NCBI GenBank assembly: GCA_048013815.1
Contig: CM106586.1
Location: forward strand, 20,770,001 to 20,834,000
Direction of reading: 5' to 3'
Length of the DNA stretch: 64,000 bases
Source: Setoptus koraiensis
Taxonomy: Eukaryota > Animalia > Arthropoda
In this document: positions 9,276-33,270 of the stretch, one piece after another
How positions within the stretch are numbered: position 1 is the stretch's first letter
Layout of the letters: each line of letters opens with the position of its first letter
Notes under the pieces: model-generated
Databases searched by the model: none
Seen by the model: the letters and a program-made list of their open reading frames with translations, nothing else
Told to the model about the DNA's origin: nothing
Program-made: the position numbers and the translations under genes

Positions 9276-11611
9276 GAATCAAACGATGGGCGTTTACTTC
9301 CAGTCTCGTTCTTATTACGCTACTTCGAAACCTTTCCTAAACTGAGAATTCAGATTAGTCTGTTGTTGATTTTCTCTTTCCTTGTTTCTTCTAATCAACT
9401 GCGCGCTGTAGAATGGCTACGACAAAACTCAGTATGCTGTTTCGTGCACTTCTTCAAGTTTACTACGATGTCAAATAGTGATTATAAACTTTCACCTTTG
9501 GTTGAGTATAAATTTGCTTATTTATCCAACTATAAGAGTGAGTCATTGAGTTGTGTGTGCAGTAAAGATAGTTAGGCAACTAGCTATGGTGGTGTTTTCT
9601 CAACAACAGCAACAACATGTACTGGATGTAGGGAATGCGCTGAGTCAATTTAACATTTAATAATGATCGCCTTTGAAAAGGTTGTTGAGTCTTTTTATAC
9701 AGGCGATGCGGAGTTGCTGAAATAACTTCTCAACTGACTTAAAACCTACTAAATATACAAACACACACACGATCTCGCACACCGACAAACAGACAAACAG
9801 CGTTTAGGAATTATTATACGGCCACTATCACTGCTACCATAGATGTAGTTGAACAACTAGATGTAATTCATCGTCGAAGAAATATCTCGAACTTTAGTGA
9901 ACATGTGATAAACTAATGTTATACCACTGCTAACCAATATGAATATTAGTCCCGGCATGAAACAAGTGCTTTATTGCACTAGGTTTTGGCACTAGTACTA
10001 GTACAGTAGCGCGGCTAGATCCATGTGTGTTACTTATCGAGCTCTATAACCTCTCTCGAGAAGCCAGTTTAGCATGGTTGGAGGAGTGAGCAAACGTGTT
10101 ATCGATGTTGTTGTTGTTGTTGTTTAGAGAGTGTCTTGATGGTGGGGTATAAACTTTCACAAACAGAGTTTGCTGTCAGCTATAAATTGAATTAATGAAG
10201 CTACATTGGTGATGGCGACCAACAACAAACACACTTGTCATGGCCCCTTACATTATCTATCATCTATTAGAGCTATCGATAGTGAAGATACGCCACTAAT
10301 TGTACCTGTTTCTCTAACTCGCTAACATTTTAATGCACACAGAACAACAACAAATCGTCTGTTGTCATTTCTTTTGATAACCAGACACACAGCTAAAGCA
10401 ACGAGTGTCGATGAAAGTTATTTTGGAATATCTCTATTGTCAATGGTATAGTCATTATCATCATGTGACCTCCACCATGAATATAAGACGATGAGGTACT
10501 ATCCTTCTTATGCAATAAGCATCAATCATCTCGTTGATTGCGCCTCATCATTTTCTCTCCATTGCTTTCTCAGGCATGCCTACCCGGCATGAATTGACTT
10601 GTGCGTGGCTTGCTAATTGTAAACTGCCCTCACGTTCGTCAATGTGTGATGAGTGACATTTTGTAAAGTGACATTTTATAGTTACTAATTGATTTCAAGT
10701 TGACCACAGGATTCATATGCTTGCAAAACCAATCGGTATGGAGTAATTACTAAACTACCTGTTGGAATATAATTAAGAATTGTGAGTCGTGCTTCTTGCA
10801 AATAAAAATGCTGTCCCCTCCCGCATCATGAGCCTTGCCACACAATAAACTCGCAAAAAAAGAAAACTAATAATTTGCCCACAATGCCAGACAATGTGGT
10901 GTTTTGTGCACAGACTCATTACGCCGCCGGCCGGCCACACACTCGGTGTAATGCGACTAGCTGATGTAATGCCCAAACGACATCATAAACCGCATTTAGT
11001 ATACCGCCGACACGCCCTCTAATCTCGGTACAGCAGCGCGGATTGATATCATCTAATTAGTAGGCCCGTACGTGGAGCCAGGCCGCAACAAAGAGCAAGG
11101 GGTTACAGCACAACTGTTGCGAATTGGATGACCGATGATCTTAATTGATCATCTTCGCCCCCTGACCAAGTACACTTCTGCCTTGAAAGCCACATTTGCC
11201 CCCACCCTGTTGGTAACGGATCTCATTATCATTTTACAGGCATCACAAATATTTATCGGCATATATTTGATTGCAGAGCTAGGACCTCTTTATTCACGTC
11301 ATATTCGCAAATTCGTTTTGTTAGAATCGGCCCAGTATATATTCATACTGAACGTGAGGCCGTATATCTACCGCTACAACCCCTCCTTCTACCGCACCGG
11401 CCCGCTCGTTCATCGCAACACACTACCGTCGCTGCCCGAGGTATTTGCACTCACAAGCTTGTCAGCTTGTCGGCGAGACACTGATTAGTTTTATTCCCAA
11501 CATCATTGTTATTATTCATCCCATTACATTGTTTATTATTATTGTTACTATCTGTAACTCACATCCGCCACCAATTCATTTATTAATTGTTGAATTATCA
11601 TACCTGTCGTC

Positions 11612-20277: not shown

Positions 20278-21699
20278 TCATTTATATTTGAGGCGTTTGA
20301 AATCATATTCTCTCTTGAGGGCGTCACGTTTGTTAGTTAAGAGTACCCTGGTTTTCACTAAATCATCTACTTCTTCTTGAAGAGTCATAATTTGGTCCAA
20401 CTTCCTTTTACGGCAGTTTTGTGCAGCCACCTTATTTTTACCTCTCCTCCTGATGTCTCTTACAAGGGATATTTCTGTTTCTGTTAGATCCATTTTGGCT
20501 AGACGGTCATTGAACTGCTCAATTGATAGATTGACAATTTCGTCGTACGATATGGGGATTTTGGCATCTTTAATACGCATACAATCTTTATTGCTTATTG
20601 ATTGTGTGTCATCGTCTTGAGGGGCCGGCGAATAATAGTTGGCAGTTATTTGCTGCTGAGGAGATGTGGTCAGTTGCTGCTGCTGGACTATCTCATGTTG
20701 TAGTTGGTGTTGGTGTTGTTGTTGCTGTTGCTGGTGCTGTTGCTGTTGAATTTGTTGTAGCGACCCGGGCTGATAATGCTGAGGTTGTAACTGGGTCGTA
20801 TATTGCTGCTGCTGTTGCATTTGTTGGATATGCGGCATAGAGCCAGACTGATACTGGCTATGCAACTGGGCATGAGTGACATATTGTTGCTGCTGATATT
20901 GGGGCTCCAACTGGGCATGGCTGGTATATAGCTGCGGCTGTTGTTGTATTTGGGCTTGCAATTGCGATTGCTGTTGCTGAACGGGCATTTCTGGGATGTA
21001 CGACGACAAAAATACGGGCTGCGATTGTTGGTCATCGTGATTAGTGGCCGGTTGACTTGATACTATTGAGCCGCTCGAATCTGGAATGGGATCGACAGAG
21101 TTGAGTAGATTATCGCCATTAGTCAGTTCGTTTTGCAACGAAGATTGTGCGATGGAGGGCCGATTGAACGAGCTGAAGTCGTGGTGGTGATGTTCATGTT
21201 GATTTAGATGGGCGCCATTTGCCAGTATTTGCTCGTTGCTTTGCACTAGATTGGCGGCGGCGCTCGGCGAATGAATGAAATTTGTGTTTGGGATGAGATA
21301 CGAATTCATTTGATGAAACGAGTGACCACCAAAAGCGGACGCGTTGACAGCGGGTGCCTCGAGAAAGGTCCATTGCTGCTGTTGTTGTTGTTGTTGGTCG
21401 TGATTATTTACATTTGTGGTCGTAGTGTCGTGAAGGTGATTGGTGGAATTGTGGTGATAGAGCTGATGATGATGGTGCTGATAATTGATGCCAGCCGATG
21501 AGTTCGGCGAGAAGGACGCCGATTGGAGATGCTGGGTATGTTGTTGCTTGTGGTTCAACATGTTGAAAGTTGGTGCTGGTTGGTGGTGCTGGTGTTTCGA
21601 TGCTTGGATATTATTATCCGTTGCGGCGAGCGCCTCTTGTTTTGGCGAAGGGCTCGCTGACGGCACTGAAACAGGTAAATGGTGCACCACTAATTCCAT
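20278..21699 (-). CDS. cnc: Cap'n'collar (CNC/Nrf2-family) bZIP transcription factor, 473 aa, Q/H-rich N-terminus
   Basis: KIPISYDEIVNLSIEQFND...LVRDIRRRGKNKVAAQNCRKRKLDQI is the CNC-bZIP signature. An in-frame TAG lies 4 codons upstream of ATG 21699. Confidence 0.9.
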   Translation of the reverse strand: MELVVHHLPVSVPSASPSPKQEALAATDNNIQASKHQHHQPAPTFNMLNHKQQHTQHLQSASFSPNSSAGINYQHHHHQLYHHNSTNHLHDTTTTNVNNHDQQQQQQQQWTFLEAPAVNASAFGGHSFHQMNSYLIPNTNFIHSPSAAANLVQSNEQILANGAHLNQHEHHHHDFSSFNRPSIAQSSLQNELTNGDNLLNSVDPIPDSSGSIVSSQPATNHDDQQSQPVFLSSYIPEMPVQQQQSQLQAQIQQQPQLYTSHAQLEPQYQQQQYVTHAQLHSQYQSGSMPHIQQMQQQQQYTTQLQPQHYQPGSLQQIQQQQHQQQQQQHQHQLQHEIVQQQQLTTSPQQQITANYYSPAPQDDDTQSISNKDCMRIKDAKIPISYDEIVNLSIEQFNDRLAKMDLTETEISLVRDIRRRGKNKVAAQNCRKRKLDQIMTLQEEVDDLVKTRVLLTNKRDALKREYDFKRLKYK

Positions 21700-21891
21700 A
21701 CTAATGGACTACTGTGATTGCGGTGACTGTTGTGCCAAAGTGGCGTGTAGCGTGTGGTATTGTGTCAAGTCAAGAGGGCTAATAGCAGCTCAAATTAGAG
21801 GATGCTGCTCGAATATGTCGCTGATATCTGTTCTATTGTCATTGCTGTATCATGGATGGTTGTGTATGATAGTCCTCATTTTGTTCATTGT

Positions 21892-21893
21892 AG

Positions 21894-21934
<41 letters not shown>

Positions 21935-21946
21935 GCTGTTGTTGTT
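21892..21946. repeat. (GTT)n microsatellite
   Basis: Read directly. Confidence 0.9.
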
Positions 21947-23976
21947 GTCACAACAAGTGGTTGCGGTAGCGGTTGTGCTGTGGTCGTGTCTACGAATAAT
22001 AATGAGTTTGCATTTACAACACACTAAAATATATATCTATAATTTGAAACGTATTAGTGAGTTCTGTTGTCACTACTTATTGCCAAGTGTGTGTACATTA
22101 AATGTTTGTTTGTGAAAAATTCTTATTATTATTAGTGTCATATACGACCAGCACTGCTGTCAGCCCGCGATACAGCTAGTGTGGTAGTAGTGGCGGCGGT
22201 TGTGGTGGCGGTGGTGGTTGGCTCATCGCAACAAGGCAACCCATGTAACATAGCCCATGTATACAGAGCCCTGCGAACAAACGACAATAATTAGACGCTA
22301 AATTAGTTATGTGTCCGGTTGGTTTTGTGCGATATTAGACCATCGCTAATCATCGCTACTGCCACTCTGACTGCGCCACTACGCTAAATCATACAACGGC
22401 CCGGCCTGGCTCGACTCGGCTCGGTTTGGCCCGGCTGGATGGCTGTTTCACTGACAATTGTGAGTTTTGGCATAACGTTAGACAAATTATAGACAGATAT
22501 AGATTTGGAAAAGCAAAGCGAGTGATACAAGTAAAACTGAACGGGCTGTGCCGAAATTTGTGACTGTGGCACAAAGCGTCGCGCATCGATCCCATTTCGC
22601 CACACGAATGTTCGGCGCTGTGCGGCGCCAAACTGTCAAATGTCAAATGTGCCCGGCACACGCAGACAGAAATCGGTGCGCACCCGGCCGTGTAAGTGGC
22701 AACAACAACAACATCGCCACCAGAGATGGATAGATACAGCAATTGTATAATGATGTCCCTGTGTGTGTCGACAGTCGACTGACCTATAGCAGTATCGGCA
22801 CCATCGTACTGTTTGCCTATTAGCTGTAGCTGCAGCAGCAACAGCTCAATTTTGACCAATCATTCTCGTCTTCGCCAGCCTGGTGAGTCAGTTGTAACTT
22901 GTGTTGTGACTTCAATTTCGCCCGGCAAACAAGTCGAATATCCAGCAAATATCACTCGCTCTCTCTAACGCTGCCCGCTAACAAACCCTGGTGGCGATAC
23001 TCACGCTTGCGACAACTGTTGTGTCCTTCATTATCTCGCTCGAGCCGCGAGCCGCGAACCGCGAGCCTCGAGCCGACCGGCAATCGGTGCCCGCTGTCAG
23101 TTGCGACGCAAGCAACACGTTGAGTATCTTCGGCGATCGTGGCCTCCCATCGGCGTCGACAAATCTGTGCACGGGGCCTCCATTTTGCAAATTCTGACGC
23201 CTTCGTCACCGGCACTTACGTGGGCACGTATGCAGATAAAGGGCACGTCGAGCTGCCGTTGCGATCGCCGTTGCGATCGTTGGTGCGGTCGATGTTGTTG
23301 CGATCGCTGTTGCGGTCGATGCTGGTGTGATGCCCGTTGTTGTTGTCGCTGTTGTTGGCACCACAAGTTGTGGAAGTGCCCTAATGGTCCGATTGTCGCA
23401 TAGTTCAGCGGTTGCTGTCGCCGTCGTGCCCCTGAGCTGGCCGCTGCAGGGCCAAGTCGCACGATCAAGCGGCCATTTTGAGCAACAAGGCGCCAGCAAA
23501 ACAATGGTGATTGGTAAAAGTCGATTGGCGCATCGACGGTCAGCGAGTCAATTTAGCCACACCATTACACACTGGATGATGACGCTCGATCGAGCTTTAA
23601 TTGGTGGCGCGACCGAGATGCCATCATTGCGATTAGCGATTCATTAGCAGCCACCGTTATTTATTCTTGTTCAATTGACTTCATATGCTGTACATTATGA
23701 TAATTATATAATGCATTGCGTCATGTTTATTATTTGCATCAGCTATGAGGGCGACAATGAGCGACAATGAGCGACAATCATTAAGAGTGACACGATTGAA
23801 AGTGACAACCCCAAAAATAGACACACACTTGACTGGGTTGATGAACTGGCAACGGTGAACCCAATCAGACTATTTCCACCTCATCGCTATAAGCAAGCAT
23901 CTCGCTATATTCGCGTTTGCTACATAATCATAATCAATTAGACTGCACGGCTGCTGTCGCCATTGTCGCCGTTGTT

Positions 23977-23980
23977 ATCG

Positions 23981-24030
<50 letters not shown>
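23977..24030. repeat. (GTT)n microsatellite
   Basis: Read directly. Confidence 0.9.
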
Positions 24031-25269: not shown

Positions 25270-25635
25270 AACTGGCGCTTAAATAGGGGGACACATCATA
25301 ATACAAACACATGTTGGGGGACCCAAACAAGGCATGATTATGTTGCTTCATTTTGCCCTTCCACTCACGAGAGCTTTCAATCTAGTACCATTGCATGCTG
25401 CTTTTGTGCATTACGCACTCAATAGTTTAAAACTCATCTGACGCTTTGTCGATCCGATTCTTGCCTCTGTATCGGACGAGCTTTATCTGTTGGGCCTCAT
25501 TGAATGCTGCAACCAATCCTCAACTATCTAATTGCTTCTTCCCGACTCACTCACGCTCATGCGACCACCCTAAACACCAATCAATCCCTAGATAATGCGC
25601 CTAACTAATCGTCAATGTTTTTTCCGCATCATAGT

Positions 25636-27469
25636 GCCCATTTACATGCCCATCCCTATACCGGTGCCCATGCCCGTGGGCCCGCACCACGGTGGCGGAG
25701 GCAAACCGAGTTACGGTGGTGGTGGCGGCGGAGGCAGCGGCGGCGGCGGCGGAGGTGGCGAGGTGAGAAAAATTTATGTTTTGCAAGCAATACCTCAGCA
25801 ACACACCAACAGGGGTATGAAGGGCGGCGGTGTGATGCATCCGCACGTGCACCCGAACCCGGTCATGGTGCAAGCGCAACCCCAACCGCCGGCCTCGTAC
25901 GAGCCGCCCGTGGTTAGACATCGTGCGCCAACACACCAGGCCAAGAAGGTACCGGGTGGGTATAGCCACGGCGACGAGGGCGGATTGTCGGAGTATGGCA
26001 GTAAAACACAGAAGAATCTTATAGATAGCCAGTTGAAAATATTGCCCATAATAGTTATACCGCCAATAGCGCCAATGGGACCCATTCAGCTGCCACAAGT
26101 TCAAACTAAGTATCACAGTGGACACAGTGCTGCAGCGCCAGTGCCCAAAATGACACTGACGCCCCAGTTTAATAATTATGTTTTGGCGCCCAAGAGCTCG
26201 CCGTCGAACAGCAACCAGTTTGTCGATGATTTTGTGCCGCCCAACATAGCGCCCTTTACCGACGCAAAGAGCTTTGCCGATTATGGCGGCAGCACGGGCG
26301 GCACCCATTTCAAGCAGACCATTGGGGCCCGAAGTCGACGACGCAGTCACATTGTGCCCCCGTCGCAGGATATGAGCAACGACGGCTACAATCAGCGACC
26401 GCAACGAACCAACAACAGACCAACTGGCGATTATGATTCCATCCAGAGTCAAATAGACGAGCCACCGATAAGCAAGGCGAGCAATTACGGCCCTCGTCAA
26501 TTCTTGTCGCCGAAACAAATATCTGTGAGGCGCACCAGGCAGCAGCAGCAACAGAGACAATTCGCTAGAGGCTCGGCCACCAAGTCGCGCCGCATCACCA
26601 GGCCCCAATTGGGCGCCAAATCTGAGGAGTTCGACGAGCCGAGTCAGCAGCATCAGGACTTTTTCGACGACGACATTGAGCAAGATCTGGACGGTTATCG
26701 GCAGTCGCGAAGCGGCGCCAGGGGCGCCCAGTACAACAGCGATCAGGCACAGTTTGAACAATCTTCTAACGGTGCATTCAATCAGCAACAACAGCAAGAA
26801 AATGTGGCCTCATACACAGAACCGAGACAACAAGTTGCTCAATTGGAACCACCGATCTTCAATGATTACGACGACATTCGTCCAAACAGACTGCAGTCGT
26901 CCGACGATAACGCCTACAGCGCCACTCATCACGCCAGACAACAACAATCCACCAATTCGGCCCGCTACATGGGCAATCAATTTTCTGGCATTAATTTCGA
27001 TATTCAAGACAATTCGGACGTCGCTCTGAGCTCGGCCTCGATGCGCAACAATGCAAGAAATCAGAGATATCAGCAACATTGGACGAGGACTCGTCAGCCG
27101 TCGCCATTTTACGATGACACCAGTGACTCTTATGACTCCGGTGCCTCTGTCATTGATGAACTGCGGGGTCTGGCCTCGGTGAAATCAATGTCGTTCGCCA
27201 ATTTCACCACCGCAACCAGCAACAGCACCACAAATGACACGCTGACAAACAGTACAATCAGCGCTAATCATGATCACAACACCAAACTCACTAGTATTAT
27301 CCTAATGCCAATTAAACAACTGACCCAACTCAATCTGAATCACAATAATAGATCGTCTACATTTCCCAATGTAAAGCACACTAAATCAAATGATGCAGCG
27401 AAGAAAACAAAATACAGCAATGTAAACAGTAGGCAGCATCATACAGAAAGAGGCTCTTTAAAAATTTGA
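25636..27469 (+). CDS. Pro/Gly/Gln-rich low-complexity hypothetical protein (about 610 aa), probably the last exon of a secreted or cuticular protein; upstream exon not identified
   Basis: 624-codon ORF with GC-rich, coding-like composition. A likely acceptor ttttttccgcatcatag| lies near 25635. It contains PIPIPVPMP, poly-G and IIVIPPIAP. Confidence 0.6.
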
Positions 27470-28314: not shown

Positions 28315-30398
28315 TCAGACAGACTCTTCTTCGGACTCGTCTCTAGTCTCCTTCTTTTTGTGGCCCTCCTTAGCGCATCGCTTAAAATTGTCCCAATAAT
28401 TTTGGTCGTTTAGTTTAGAATGATCTCTACAATTCTCTGGACCTAATGTGTGTATCATGGCATAATCTAAACAGGTAATATTTCCGTCACCATCACAATC
28501 ATACAAATATCTTTTGTCTACGTTTTTGTGAACTATCCCCATATAATTGATAACGGTATCCACAGCGCACTCTAATTCGTTGGCACAGTCCTCAAAAGCT
28601 AGCATAGGAAAAATAAGTCATCATAACAATTGATTGATCAATAAATAGAGCCGAACAAACGCATCTCATCTACGAATATAAATTGAAATATGAATTGTAG
28701 AGCTTACCTAAATGGTCGTTGGTGTTGTTGCCTGGCGCGTCTCCTCTCCCCCAATATTCTCTGGTCAATTTGAATGGTCCACAATGATATTGATCTTGAC
28801 CGCGAGTGACGCAACGCAAATCTTGGTCGCATCCAGTCGAGGCCTATCGTCGATGAAACACAAAGATCATTATAATTATTATTAGATTTGTATATAAATA
28901 ATATTTTAGGTGCAACTTAATCGCTTTTAAGAGTCCAGGTAACTATGTCTCAGTTGATTATACTCACAACACATATGCAACGAAGACAATCATCGTTGAG
29001 TCCGACATCGGACAGCTCCTCAATTATCGGCTTGGATCGGGGCTGGCTCAACTGCACAGGAGTTGTTTGTTTCTTGGTCGCGCTCGACTTCTTGAAGTCC
29101 ATTCTCTTTGGGCTTTCCGGATTCTTAGTCAGGTGTATGACCTCGTTGGATTGACTGCCAGAGGTGTCGGTCTTTTCCGGATCACCAGATTCTGACGTGT
29201 CGTCATTATCATTGGAATTACCACTGTCATCATTACCGTTACTATCATTGTCTGATGATGTCGAGTCCTCATTACTGTTGCTGTCCTTGTCATCATTAGC
29301 TTTATTTGTCTCTTGTTGTTTTGGTTCTGATTTACTTGTTTGCGGCGGGGTCTGCTTAGGCTTGTTGGCAAGCATCTGATTATTTGCATTTGAGTTGGTG
29401 CTTGTAGCTGTACCGGTGGACTGACCATTTAATCTAGAAGTGAATGTTTGAGCGGCTTGCTGGGGTGTCAAGAATTGTTGGGGATAATTTGTCATTTGTT
29501 GAGGCTGAGTGGTCAATAATTGACTGGCCAACTGATTGGGGGCAGACACAAATGGCGACTGGTATATGTTCTGTTGAAGTTGCTGAAGCTGCTGAAGTCG
29601 TTGCTGCTGTTTTTGTAGTTGCTGCTGCAATTGATGCTGCAGTTGCAGTTGTTGTTGTTGTTGCTGCTGCTGTTGTTGCATTTGTTGAATTTGCTGTATT
29701 GATCCGGGCTGGTAGTGGGGCTGCAATTGAGCCTGGCTCGTGTATTGTTGCTGCTGTTGCATTTGGGTTTGAGTTTGGGGTTGCAGCTGAGATGGCTGTT
29801 GCTGAACGGGTATTTCTGGGATATAAGAAGACAAAAATATGGGCTGCAGTTGTTGGTCGTCTTGATTGATAGCCGGCTGACTCGATATTGTTGAGCCACT
29901 CGAGTCTGGAATAGAATTGACAGAGTTGAGTATATTATCGCTATTTGACAATTCGTTTTGCAACGAAGATTGTACGACGGAGGGCCGACTGAACGAGCTG
30001 AAATCAGGGCTATTCTGATTTGTCAGAAGATGCCCGCTCGTCATTAGATTGGCGCTTGGCGAATGGATGAAATTTGTACTTGGAATGAGATACGAATTCA
30101 TTGAATGAAATGAATGGCCACCAAAACTGGATGGACTTACAGCGGGTGTCTCGAGGAAGGTCCATTGCGGATTGTTTGATAATGTTTGTTCATGATTATT
30201 TACATTTGTCTTGGTATCGTGCATGTGAATTTGTTGTTGATGATTGATACTGTCGGTTGAAGTTGGCGAAAAAGAAGCTGCTGGCTGCTTATTTAGCAAA
30301 TTGAATGATGATTGCTTAGATTGTTGCTCGCTTAAAGCAATTAGCGGCGGCGGGCTTGCTGGCACTAGAACAGGTTGATGATACAACATCAGTTCCAT
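28315..30398 (-). CDS. i-type (destabilase-family) lysozyme preceded in the same reading frame by a CNC-derived Q-rich region and an S/N/D-rich linker; exons 30398(or further 5')-28968, 28843-28708, 28598-28315
   Basis: The splice product reads NDDCLRCICV|ASTGCDQDLRCVTRGQDQYHCGPFKLTREYW...DHL|AFEDCANELECAVDTVINYM...DCDGDGNITCLDYAMIHTLGPENC, with canonical GTGAGT..TAG and GTAAGC..TAG introns. The lysozyme call is strong; the 5' structure is less certain. Confidence 0.72.
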
Positions 30399-31299
30399 GA
30401 TACGATTAATGGGCGACTGGTGGGCCAATGTCTCCAGCGATGGATCGTTGAGGTCAAGAGAGGAATTGTTGTTTATCACACTGGAGCTGGCCACAGGATT
30501 GTTGCTGTTGTTATTATCATTGTTAGTACGATAAATGTGTATTATTCTTGATTGAGTTAATTTAGGATCATGGCTGTACAATAAAAGTATACAAGTTATC
30601 AATAATTTGGCACTTGGAGCTAGTCTGTTATAAGTATATTTATAAATTTTACATTTATTCATACAATTTATTGTGACTATTTTAGTTTTCTTCTTCTTTG
30701 AATATTCCATTTGGATAGTAGTTGCTGCGGACACAGGCTCATAATGTAACCATGAATATACATGACGATTGTTAAACATAGTGTTGATGTACAATTAATC
30801 AATGATGATTAACATCACTGGATACAACAAGCTGATTCTGATTGTTGATTATGCAATAACCAAAGTAAACTATCTGGGCTGATGAACTCTCTCATCGTGA
30901 CACAACATCAATAATCTAGCCAACGCAAAATCCAAAGAAAGAATGATGTTCTTTCTTTTTGTTTTCTAATAAAATCGTTTGCTCGAACGGAGACAAAACC
31001 TTCATCAAACGAACGATGAATGCCCTTATTCGAGACAAAGAAACAACATATTACTTTCTATTCACTGACTGCTGTGTAACTCAATCTTGTAAAGATCATC
31101 CTCTGAGAGACTATCTCGTAAATCTTACAATCGCTTACAATTGAACCCATGCCAAAATCTAGAATGCTCTGATAGTTTTAAGCAAATTGTTGTAGCTCAA
31201 TACATCGAAGAATCCTCCGCTTGACGACGACGATGACAACAACAACTATTACGGTGACAAAAGCGGTTCGTAATGAATATAATAATGTCGCTACATTGT

Positions 31300-31329
<30 letters not shown>
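31300..31329. repeat. (CT)n microsatellite
   Basis: Read directly. Confidence 0.9.
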
Positions 31330-31331
<2 letters not shown>

Positions 31332-31551
31332 GAGACCTGTTGTTGTGACTGCCGCTGTTGATGTTCTTGTGGATAGTAGTTGTTGTCGCTGCAGAGATGC
31401 ACCAGAGGAAGCAACAGATGTAATCACTTCCTAAAAGGTGACAATTTCCTCTTTCTCAGTCAGTCAGCCAGTGTCGTCCAAAGGAAGGTGACGATTCTAG
31501 ATCGCCTTTGAATTGCTCGGTTGCCTGGTGAGCTTACATTAAAATTATCCA

Positions 31552-33270
31552 TCAGGATCCAGTGTACGTCAGGTGATGATTGTATTGGAAAATGTGCCTC
31601 TCAAACAGCCTCGATATTGACAATAATTTTCTATCTTGAAATTGACCTGATATTAGCTGTAGACCAATAGGCAGACCAGCCGAGCTTATAGTAACGGGAA
31701 GATGAATGGAGGGCAACCCAGCTAGATTGGCCGGAATCAAACAATAGTCTTCAGCAAATAGTTTGTTTTCGTCTTGTTTGCGCAACCATTCAATGTTCTT
31801 CGTGGCCGTGGTGGGTGTTGATGGTACTAGAATCACATCTACTCCTCTGTTATTATCACTATTATTGCTATTATTATTATCATTATTATGATTGAAAGCT
31901 CTAACAAAATCTTGATAGACTAATTGGCGCACTTTCAACGCTTGAAAATAGTACTTTTGCTTATTATCGCCATGGAGAAAATAATTGCCTAGTAAGATTC
32001 GCTTTTTCACCTCTGAATTGAATCCTTGATCTCTATTCAATTTATACCACTCGTCACGATCGAAGGCATTGTTATTGTGTGTTTTTGATAGAGCCGATCT
32101 ATCACTAAAACCATATCTAACACCATCGTAGCATGACATATTGGAGGCCACTTCGCAGCTGCTCAGTATTGTATAACATTCAGTCGAATGTATGATATTA
32201 GGTGTGGATATCCGGACAATATCAAATATTGTGCCGAAATCGCTACCTATTAATTTTATAGTGTTTTCCCAGAGTGAACAGACCTCTTGGGATAATTCTC
32301 CACATCTACTGAACTCATCCGGTATGCCTATTCTTATTTTCCTCCCATTCAAATTTCCCATCTCCAGCACATTACTATAGTCATACTGTTCACAGTGACT
32401 ACCATTGACGCCCATTCGAGCTTTGTCCAAATCCAACGAGGTCAAGTCATTTTCGTCGGCACCCACCATGTGCTCGAATATCACCTCGACATCGTCAACA
32501 TGCCTCGCCAATATACTGACGGTATCCAATGAATGTGCCAGAGGTATTAAACCAAATCGCGATATAATCCCATAGGAAGGTTTAAAACCGACAACCCCCA
32601 CCATACTGGCTGGATGACGATTTGAGCCGCCAGTATCTGTACCGATGGCACCAAACACCGATCCGGTGGCCACAGCTACGGCGCTACCCGTGGAGCTTCC
32701 TCCCGCCATGTACCATGTTTCAGGAGCATCCAAATTGAATTGATTATCACTGGCGATAGTCTCGGTTGACTTGCCGTCTGGCTCTTTTAACTGAGCCATG
32801 CTTTTGAAATGCGGCTGACCAAAAGATCCCCAAGGATTGGCCGTGGGACCATAGTGAGATGTGACACTACTAGAGCCCATAGCGAACTCGTCCAAGTTTG
32901 TTTTGCCCAGCATAATTGCACCAGAATTGTTGCACAGCTTATCGACTATTGTGGCGTCATAGGGCGGATAGTAATTGGCCAACATTTTAGATCCGCACGA
33001 GGTGAGAATATTCTTGGTGCAGAAATTATCCTTTATTGCGATGGGAATGCCGTTCAAGAGGGTTCCTTTTGTACTAGGTTCATGATGATCCAAGGTTTGA
33101 GCCTTTTCCAAGGCCAAATCTTTATTTATTGTAATGAAGGCATTCAAATATTTTGTTTCGCTGGCTATCCTGAGACATTCTTTACATAATCGTGTGGCAG
33201 TGATCTCTTTCTGACGCAGTAGTTTGCTCACATCTCTGATGCACAAACTGGCTAGAGTGTTGCCATTCAT
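31552..33270 (-). CDS. QRSL1: Mitochondrial glutamyl-tRNA(Gln) amidotransferase subunit A (amidase signature), 572 aa, intronless
   Basis: IAIKDNF, GKTNLDEFAMGS, GGSSTGSA, GTDTGGS, GFKPSYG, SRFGLIPL, SNMSCYDGVRYG, EVKKRILLGNYFL, PANLAGLPSI. Confidence 0.95.
   Translation of the reverse strand: MNGNTLASLCIRDVSKLLRQKEITATRLCKECLRIASETKYLNAFITINKDLALEKAQTLDHHEPSTKGTLLNGIPIAIKDNFCTKNILTSCGSKMLANYYPPYDATIVDKLCNNSGAIMLGKTNLDEFAMGSSSVTSHYGPTANPWGSFGQPHFKSMAQLKEPDGKSTETIASDNQFNLDAPETWYMAGGSSTGSAVAVATGSVFGAIGTDTGGSNRHPASMVGVVGFKPSYGIISRFGLIPLAHSLDTVSILARHVDDVEVIFEHMVGADENDLTSLDLDKARMGVNGSHCEQYDYSNVLEMGNLNGRKIRIGIPDEFSRCGELSQEVCSLWENTIKLIGSDFGTIFDIVRISTPNIIHSTECYTILSSCEVASNMSCYDGVRYGFSDRSALSKTHNNNAFDRDEWYKLNRDQGFNSEVKKRILLGNYFLHGDNKQKYYFQALKVRQLVYQDFVRAFNHNNDNNNSNNSDNNRGVDVILVPSTPTTATKNIEWLRKQDENKLFAEDYCLIPANLAGLPSIHLPVTISSAGLPIGLQLISGQFQDRKLLSISRLFERHIFQYNHHLTYTGS

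Follow-up and report, generated by a model that had tools for sequence, protein, structure and literature searches.

Chimeric genes that arise by partial duplication and fusion are reportedly exemplified by jingwei and Sdic in Drosophila. An intact parent nearby and a partial 5′ coding copy joined in frame, locally and in the same orientation, are shared with that type by a locus of the mite Setoptus koraiensis, in which a copy of the N-terminal region of a CNC transcription factor runs on into an i-type lysozyme (destabilase) domain. The locus lies on the minus strand of a 64,000-nucleotide stretch, called the window below (GenBank assembly GCA_048013815.1, contig CM106586.1, positions 20,770,001 to 20,834,000 of the forward strand); all window coordinates derive from contig C2:20770001-20834000, and the genome searched is the 48.7-Mb, two-contig assembly. 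The parent is intact with its bZIP domain, the copy is partial, and the parts from the two genes stand in one open frame. The locus is read here as a real, well-delimited hybrid open reading frame (ORF) and most likely as a working chimeric gene, which would probably take the form of one three-exon minus-strand gene of roughly 620-740 codons, with the N-terminal copy of CNC joined to the i-type lysozyme. In contrast to the jingwei and Sdic type, the captured piece is disordered, runs to a length of about 300 codons and is probably internal behind 132 codons, and the partners would be an odd pair, namely the N-terminus of a nuclear regulator and a disulphide-rich domain of secreted type.

With the CNC-bZIP factors (Nrf2, NF-E2, CncC and SKN-1) the hybrid is connected through an N-terminal region of ~345 residues that is paralogous to the mite's own CNC. 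This parent is an intact, single-exon gene at 20278..21699 (-) and the source of the duplicated region, encoding a protein of 473 amino acids (aa) with a bZIP_Maf domain at residues 384-468 (E 4.5e-16, 59.6 bits), whose best solved-structure matches are Nrf2 (E 3e-21), NF-E2 p45, BACH1 and SKN-1. Residues 133-359 of the hybrid ORF align with residues 1-266 of the CNC ORF at 54% identity (E 5e-66), and the alignment begins at an identical Met (MEL...) in both, at 30398 and 21699. A MAFFT alignment continued the homology across the polyglutamine (polyQ) region as far as CNC residue 345-355 or so, which leaves about 30 residues before the CNC/bZIP domain. An earlier note on this DNA, which had described 30398 to about 29485 as a stop-free paralogue of the CNC N-terminal region with homology ending near the bZIP, is borne out on all of these points.

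At the DNA level, 20892-21439 and 29708-30228 are 74.7% identical (repeat families D6, D8 and D9 of the window). Exactly 2 copies of the CNC N-terminal region were found in a six-frame search of the whole genome, with 68% identity over 231 aa. Copy and parent differ at 223 of 834 aligned bases (26.7%), distributed 66/44/113 over the three codon positions, and the frame of homology is unchanged across 14 gap runs. The non-repetitive part of the copy, 29790..30398 (-), starts at the CNC-type Met and is paralogous to CNC residues 1 to about 245, followed by a Q-rich continuation at 29493..29789 (-) whose homology to the polyQ stretch of CNC reaches to about LTTQPQQMTNY. The blocks WTFLE.PAV, FGGHSFH.MNSYLIP.TNFIHSPSA and IPDSSGS..SSQPA...FLSSYIPE.PVQQQ are kept, and the IPDSSGS(I/T)(V/I)SSQPA block (29900-29930 and 21080-21110, (-)) is one that we take to recall the DSGxS-type phosphodegrons of Nrf-family proteins. 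Different from the CNC-bZIP factors, the hybrid contains no CNC domain, basic region or zipper, a profile scan of the 614-aa hybrid ORF gave no bZIP_Maf or bZIP match, and the shared region has no detectable relative outside this genome. The predicted hybrid is hence a carrier of the CNC N-terminal region and not itself a CNC factor. Seven bZIP_Maf-type matches occur in the genome as a whole, with the CNC of the window ranking fourth and a 576-aa frame at C2:1099765-1100034 at the top.

The ORF at 28950..30794 (-) is 614 aa long, of which 609 codons (30794-28968) precede a splice donor. Its frame is free of stops between 30797 and 28952; each of the two remaining same-strand frames has 20-40 outside the Q-rich repeat. 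Upstream of the CNC-like part lies a stop-free extension of 132 codons (30399..30794, (-)), and downstream of it an acidic, S/N/D/T/K-rich linker (29031..29492, (-)), which is unique in the genome and has a coding-like codon score. The linker leads into the end of exon 1 (28968..29030, (-); ...SDVGLNDDCLRCICV), which encodes cysteines 1 to 3 of the lysozyme domain and in which the first seven domain residues, CLRCICV, are followed by the donor GTGAGT at 28967. The passage of one frame through an S/N/D-rich linker into the first lysozyme exon, as originally described, is therefore confirmed as far as CLRCICV and its donor. Intron 1 (28844..28967, (-); 124 nucleotides (nt), GT..AG, phase 0) would bring in an in-frame stop at 28952 if left unspliced. 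It is followed by exon 2 (28708..28843, (-); 136 nt, ASTGCDQDLRCVTRGQDQYHCGPFKLTREYWGRGDAPGNNTNDHL, with ASTGC...NDHL), by intron 2 (28599..28707, (-); 109 nt, GTAAGC..AG, phase 1, donor at 28707) and by exon 3 (28315..28598, (-)), which encodes 6 cysteines, an 8-residue insertion (GIVHKNVD) and an acidic/basic tail and ends in a stop at 28317-28315. Exons 2 and 3 together contribute 417 nt, so that the frame closes. Near the lysozyme exons, a CLxCIC-coding site occurs only once on both strands of the window, at 28988; the other pattern match in the window, an unrelated CLNCLC at 59275, has stops on both sides. The domain must accordingly use the 3′ end of the long ORF, and since no in-frame stop separates the two parts, any transcript that covers both encodes the fusion.

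In searches, profile scans and alignments the exons were handled one by one. Exon 3 matches the Destabilase family (PF05497) with 58.7 bits (gathering cut-off 26.2; E 8.4e-16) at profile positions 52-116, exon 2 does so with 17.4 bits at positions 23-47, and the domain was also retrieved by a Destabilase profile search of the genome. The cysteines of the exon 1 tail, exon 2 and exon 3 (3 + 3 + 6) make up 12 of 12 aligned to the cysteines of the paralogues, and identity to the other Destabilase domains of the genome is 35-43% (38-43% for exon 3 alone). When compared with the leech destabilase-lysozyme 8bbu, exon 3 gives an E of 2.2e-5 and exon 2 aligns to residues 15-50; a full-length domain, the 12-Cys framework and the CGPF..YW and DCDGDG..ITC..Y motifs are shared with this i-type lysozyme, whereas the 8-residue insertion and the position of the domain at the end of a ~600-residue non-lysozyme region are not. 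Chain positions 14 and 26 of 8bbu correspond to T and R/G here, in a weak HMMER alignment of a short piece (E 9.3). These positions are presumably the catalytic Glu14 and Asp26 of destabilase, equivalent to Glu18 and Asp30 in the clam enzyme. The residue after CIC is V, where all five paralogue domains have E. Taken together, these replacements suggest that the domain is probably not a muramidase. The provisional reading is of a domain that would lack the usual catalytic Glu/Asp and is unlikely to act as a muramidase, its fold membership being unaffected.

The absence of the canonical catalytic residues, together with the V after CIC, would also suit a pseudogene that died recently, or a chance arrangement that is not expressed. 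Such an origin of the whole unit is very improbable in view of 0 stops, 0 frameshifts, intact GT..AG introns and 12/12 cysteines, despite a synonymous divergence (dS) of about 0.5-0.9 between copy and parent.

The build of the hybrid resembles that of the mucin-like lysozyme genes in the same genome. A 1164-aa ORF at L009 2632..6126 (-) (C1 about 10631-14125) carries three Destabilase domains separated by long low-complexity N/S/T-rich spacers, begins with a TTG start, contains a hydrophobic segment about 55-75 residues in, and reads CICE in all three domains. In a second multi-domain lysozyme cluster, at L010 2700-5700 (-) (C1 about 12735700-12738700), introns cut inside the domains, and a 489-aa exon comprises a domain end, a ~400-residue T/P-rich spacer and CLGCICE, followed by gtaagc...cacag and ASSNC. 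The phase-0 position of this intron, after CIC-E, is identical to that of intron 1 of the hybrid. Long low-complexity exons ending in CLxCIC, one same phase-0 intron position and a hydrophobic segment some tens of residues from the first ATG are therefore shared. The hybrid differs in its single domain, in a spacer that is partly CNC-derived and Q-rich/acidic instead of T/P/S-rich, in the V for E after CIC, and in intron 2, which is not in common. In its upstream extension the hybrid resembles the N-terminus of the three-domain gene only marginally (p 0.024) and that of the second cluster not at all. As a long disordered exon ending in CLxCIC is the normal build of the family, a Q/S/N-rich fragment of CNC could be tolerated as a spacer.

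Several statistics indicate that the frame is coding and maintained. The upstream extension has 0 stops where the two other frames have 10 and 15, and a stop-free version of it arose in none of 5000 shuffles that preserved dinucleotides and in 4 of 20000 that preserved mononucleotides. Under dinucleotide-preserving shuffling, the non-repetitive CNC-like part (203 codons) and the linker with the exon-1 tail (175 codons) were each stop-free in 2 of 5000 cases. At the observed divergence, a simulation of drift left the CNC-like frame open in 17 of 5000 runs when half of the changes were placed on the copy and in 3 of 5000 when three quarters were, which supports maintenance of this frame. Codon usage was scored with a table trained on ten long ORFs of the window, using sense codons only so that missing stops earn no credit. 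Read in the ORF frame, the linker reaches +19.6 nats, at 0.127 per codon the same level as lysozyme exon 3, whereas an alternative 99-codon open frame over it scores -25.7 nats; its D, N, S, T and K residues are written with mixed synonymous codons. The CNC-like and Q-rich parts are neutral on this score, and frame tests of the Q-rich part are uninformative owing to low complexity. Genome searches found no paralogue of the upstream extension elsewhere and no homologue of the linker in CNC or elsewhere.

The CNC-like part might instead serve as an alternative first exon of CNC, as the earlier note had considered, joined across some 9 kb to the CNC gene a short way ahead of its CNC/bZIP domain, so that the lysozyme gene would sit inside the intron. 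Alternative 5′ exons are known for Drosophila cnc, and acceptor-like sites (accacatctcctcag/CAG, the slash marking the cut) are present at 20655/20652, near the end of the homology. The proposed donor, G/GTACAG with its GT at 29413, is however in phase 1 and the acceptors in phase 0, so that the join would be out of frame; the homology runs about 10 codons beyond the acceptor; and the strong donor-like sites in the ORF are those at 30140, 28967 and 28707 only. Moreover, the open, coding-like linker would be left unexplained, and the intron would have to span the lysozyme exons and a 624-codon ORF. In Aculops lycopersici, a relative, introns have a median length of 170 bp and intergenic regions one of 538 bp, and 84% of genes are intronless (PMC7738191); such compactness makes simple compact gene models the default in the group. 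Use as a CNC exon can thus hardly be expected. The site at 30140 (-) is a perfect GTAAGT donor-like hexamer in phase 0, which codes for V-S in WTFLETPAVSPSS, a CNC-conserved block; no in-frame partner acceptor was found for it.

Where the hybrid protein begins bears on its destination. In-frame ATGs are present in the extension at 30779, 30710 (caaATGg, the best context) and 30662, and the CNC-type Met at 30398 has a good context as well (atcATGg). Residues 62-74 (AKLLITCILLLYS, 30611-30573) form the sole hydrophobic stretch of the exon-1 product, and the LLITCILLLY already pointed out at 30605-30576 lies within it. The best 19-residue window there has a mean hydropathy of 1.16, which is below the level of a membrane helix and compatible with a signal-peptide core, so these residues are a possible, putative core of this kind. 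That a six-disulphide domain has been kept intact argues for export, and a secreted hybrid with the CNC piece internal is the preferred version. The ATGs at 30779, 30710 and 30662 together with the stop-free extension would place the CNC piece inside the protein rather than at its N-terminus, and the predicted coding start is very probably one of these three, upstream of 30398. A small intron from 30664 to 30575 that would remove the hydrophobic stretch was considered and rejected, as its phases do not match.

In a capture of the front end without export, the promoter, leader and start of CNC would have been taken over together, giving a cytosolic or nuclear protein of ~616 residues from 30398, in which the regulatory and transactivation region of CNC, devoid of DNA binding, would precede the linker and the lysozyme-like domain, and which could be a decoy for the partners of CNC. 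Such a capture is a variant of the preferred version that differs in start codon and location. The two copies do share their starting Met, whose context is good, and the FGGHSFH.MNSYLIP.TNFIHSPSA and IPDSSGS blocks are kept. Upstream, the DNA 106-190 nt before both ATGs shows weak collinear similarity (p about 0.016), suggesting that the duplicate took in some of the CNC leader. A first local alignment of the DNA upstream of the starts had returned an AAC repeat only, the protein-level local alignment upstream of both Met residues scored 32 against a shuffle null of 32, and alignments of the upstream DNA detected no promoter homology between CNC and the copy. A capture of this kind also leaves unexplained the 132 upstream codons, stop-free in none of the 5000 shuffles and provided with three in-frame ATGs, and the intact 12-cysteine domain fits an oxidising compartment and not the cytosol. 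A start at 30398 is consequently regarded as unlikely, if still to be reckoned with. The pattern LDL...TLA.QSP is common to the same frame upstream of both starts (21700-21790 and 30399-30470, (-)) and is not significant by shuffling; within this stretch the CNC copy has 3 in-frame stops and the paralogue 0.

A number of points weigh against a maintained and secreted hybrid. The putative signal peptide is atypical, lying 17-58 residues from the candidate ATGs with a core of only 10-11 residues, the T-rich codons of the hydrophobic stretch could equally be the pyrimidine tract of a splice site, and a start at 30398 would leave no signal peptide and a 12-Cys domain in the cytosol. The codon score was falsely positive on two antisense GTT/GCT-repeat ORFs and is therefore taken as supporting evidence only. 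The ratio of nonsynonymous to synonymous divergence (dN/dS) between the two CNC-like segments, a check that the earlier note had proposed, is 0.24-0.59 by three methods (0.24-0.45 over the homologous part by NG86, LWL85 and maximum likelihood (ML)) and about 1 by YN00, with 0.37-0.87 in the best-aligned block. Since a constrained parent and a freely drifting copy would together give about 0.5, these values would fit residue-level free drift of the copy as well, and what is supported is the integrity of the frame and not constraint on its residues. The dS between copy and parent falls to 0.26-0.48 in the central block and rises above 1.3 in the flanks. The lower central values may reflect alignment error or gene conversion from CNC, which could help to hold the central block open without selection. 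The extension and the linker have no homologue anywhere in the genome, and their openness cannot be explained by conversion.

Searches outside the genome point in the same unfavourable direction. No hit was obtained by phmmer with the 609-aa product among 1.84 billion representatives. Among 8000 candidates, a word search that used the 477-aa exon-1 product beginning at the CNC-type Met turned up no match, probably because polyQ words swamped it, and none of 88 candidates scored in a word search with the non-repetitive region 70-205. The ESM Atlas contained no usable match and NCBIfam none. A Logan contig that covers the neighbouring region in a close sister species ends in a (GA)n run, 441 nt past the adjacent GatA gene and about 330 nt before the ORF.

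Another reading is that the locus holds two units instead of one. The lysozyme could start internally, at an in-frame ATG of the linker (for instance MDFKK near 29100), or be spliced at the acceptor at 29434 to a distant signal-peptide exon, and the CNC-like frame would then be a relic in decay, a leader, or the source of a short-lived product of its own. The lack of demonstrable residue constraint on the CNC-like part agrees with such a division, as do the acceptor-like ttcacttctag at 29434 (phase 2) and the part that conversion from CNC could play in keeping the central block open. Against it, a single frame runs open through three independent segments (p below 0.001 for every one), among them the conversion-proof extension and linker, and the two parts are not separated by an in-frame stop. 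No hydrophobic segment lies behind the internal ATGs, and between 28.9 and 31.5 kb neither a signal-peptide exon of the CLxCIC kind nor another candidate was found. A division into two units is for these reasons judged rather unlikely, and its version with the acceptor at 29434 and a distant first exon, which had been listed earlier among the alternatives, fails to account for two long open frames.

The single hybrid gene is better described as the outcome of a partial gene duplication that was fused to, or inserted in, a long lysozyme exon than of intron-mediated exon shuffling. From the original proposal of a new gene made by exon shuffling, the single frame that joins the CNC copy and the lysozyme is thus retained and the mechanism is replaced. 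The partial duplicate would have comprised the start codon of CNC, perhaps up to 190 nt of its leader, and coding sequence that stops shortly before the CNC/bZIP domain. It would have landed 8.7 kb upstream in the same orientation, within a lysozyme gene's long first exon of low complexity or in front of it. The product, read from 30779, 30710 or 30662 to 28315, would have roughly 700-740 residues, arranged as a short basic N-terminal stretch with the hydrophobic segment, ~300 CNC-derived residues including polyQ, the acidic linker, the splice after CLRCICV, and the domain. In such a protein, the disordered CNC piece may be carried as a spacer whose residues are freer to drift, whereas stops and frameshifts in it would be purged by selection, since the lysozyme-like domain that follows would be lost with them. 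Export is suggested by the disulphide-rich nature of that domain, and residues 62-74 would provide the signal-peptide core.

A stronger proposal is that the CNC piece is itself a working module, such as a regulatory or transactivation copy without DNA binding, a decoy for the partners or degradation machinery of CNC, or an extracellular re-use tethered to a non-catalytic lysozyme-like domain, with blocks such as FGGHSFH.MNSYLIP.TNFIHSPSA and the degron-like IPDSSGS preserved, and this is considered quite improbable. If it were true, xenobiotic or oxidative-stress signalling would be linked to the sensing of microbes, in a mite whose detoxification genes have mostly been lost. If the gene is expressed, a long disordered region of a transcription factor would have been absorbed by an unrelated, probably secreted protein and would have stayed open for long (dS about 0.5-0.9). 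It would then also offer a clean case of gene birth in a lineage under extreme genome streamlining, with a large part of a master stress regulator and a domain of immune type as its building blocks. Homology-based annotation pipelines would probably report a "truncated CNC" or a "lysozyme without signal peptide" and overlook the hybrid.

Upstream of the hybrid, the gene at 31552..33270 (-) encodes the mitochondrial amidase GatA, with its best named relatives, of ~50% identity, in Fragariocoptes setiger and Aceria tosichella and of 88% on the Logan contig, and these relatives agree with an eriophyoid (tiny plant-feeding) mite. The Logan contig (L022:1-12141, run SRR33593474) is collinear with 45950-31122 of the window at 81-86% nucleotide identity, intergenic DNA included, and carries RAD50-like, phosphorylase-kinase beta and GatA genes. 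The more distant eriophyoid loci of F. setiger and of an ENA mite (L023 and L024) have no homologue of the lysozyme, CNC, Ac45 or the 624-codon ORF beside GatA. The spacer between the GatA stop (31552) and the long ORF, 30795..31551 (-), is presumed to hold the promoter and 5′ untranslated region (5′UTR) and contains a (GA)n run near 31300-31330. Down to 31122 it aligns to the Logan contig at about 81% identity, and its codon-frame score is strongly non-coding in a version of the score that counts stops and was judged biased.

The 624-codon ORF lies between the CNC copies on the plus strand (25595-27469), convergent with the lysozyme, and is accompanied by a 402-codon antisense shadow ORF. Its coding-frame statistics are positive, and it has no Pfam or NCBIfam match. 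The 22-24 kb block upstream of CNC is richer in GC (0.49). Together with AAC/GTT trinucleotide runs at 21895-21960 and 23975-24030 (-), this GC-richer block gives rise to many spurious open frames on both strands.

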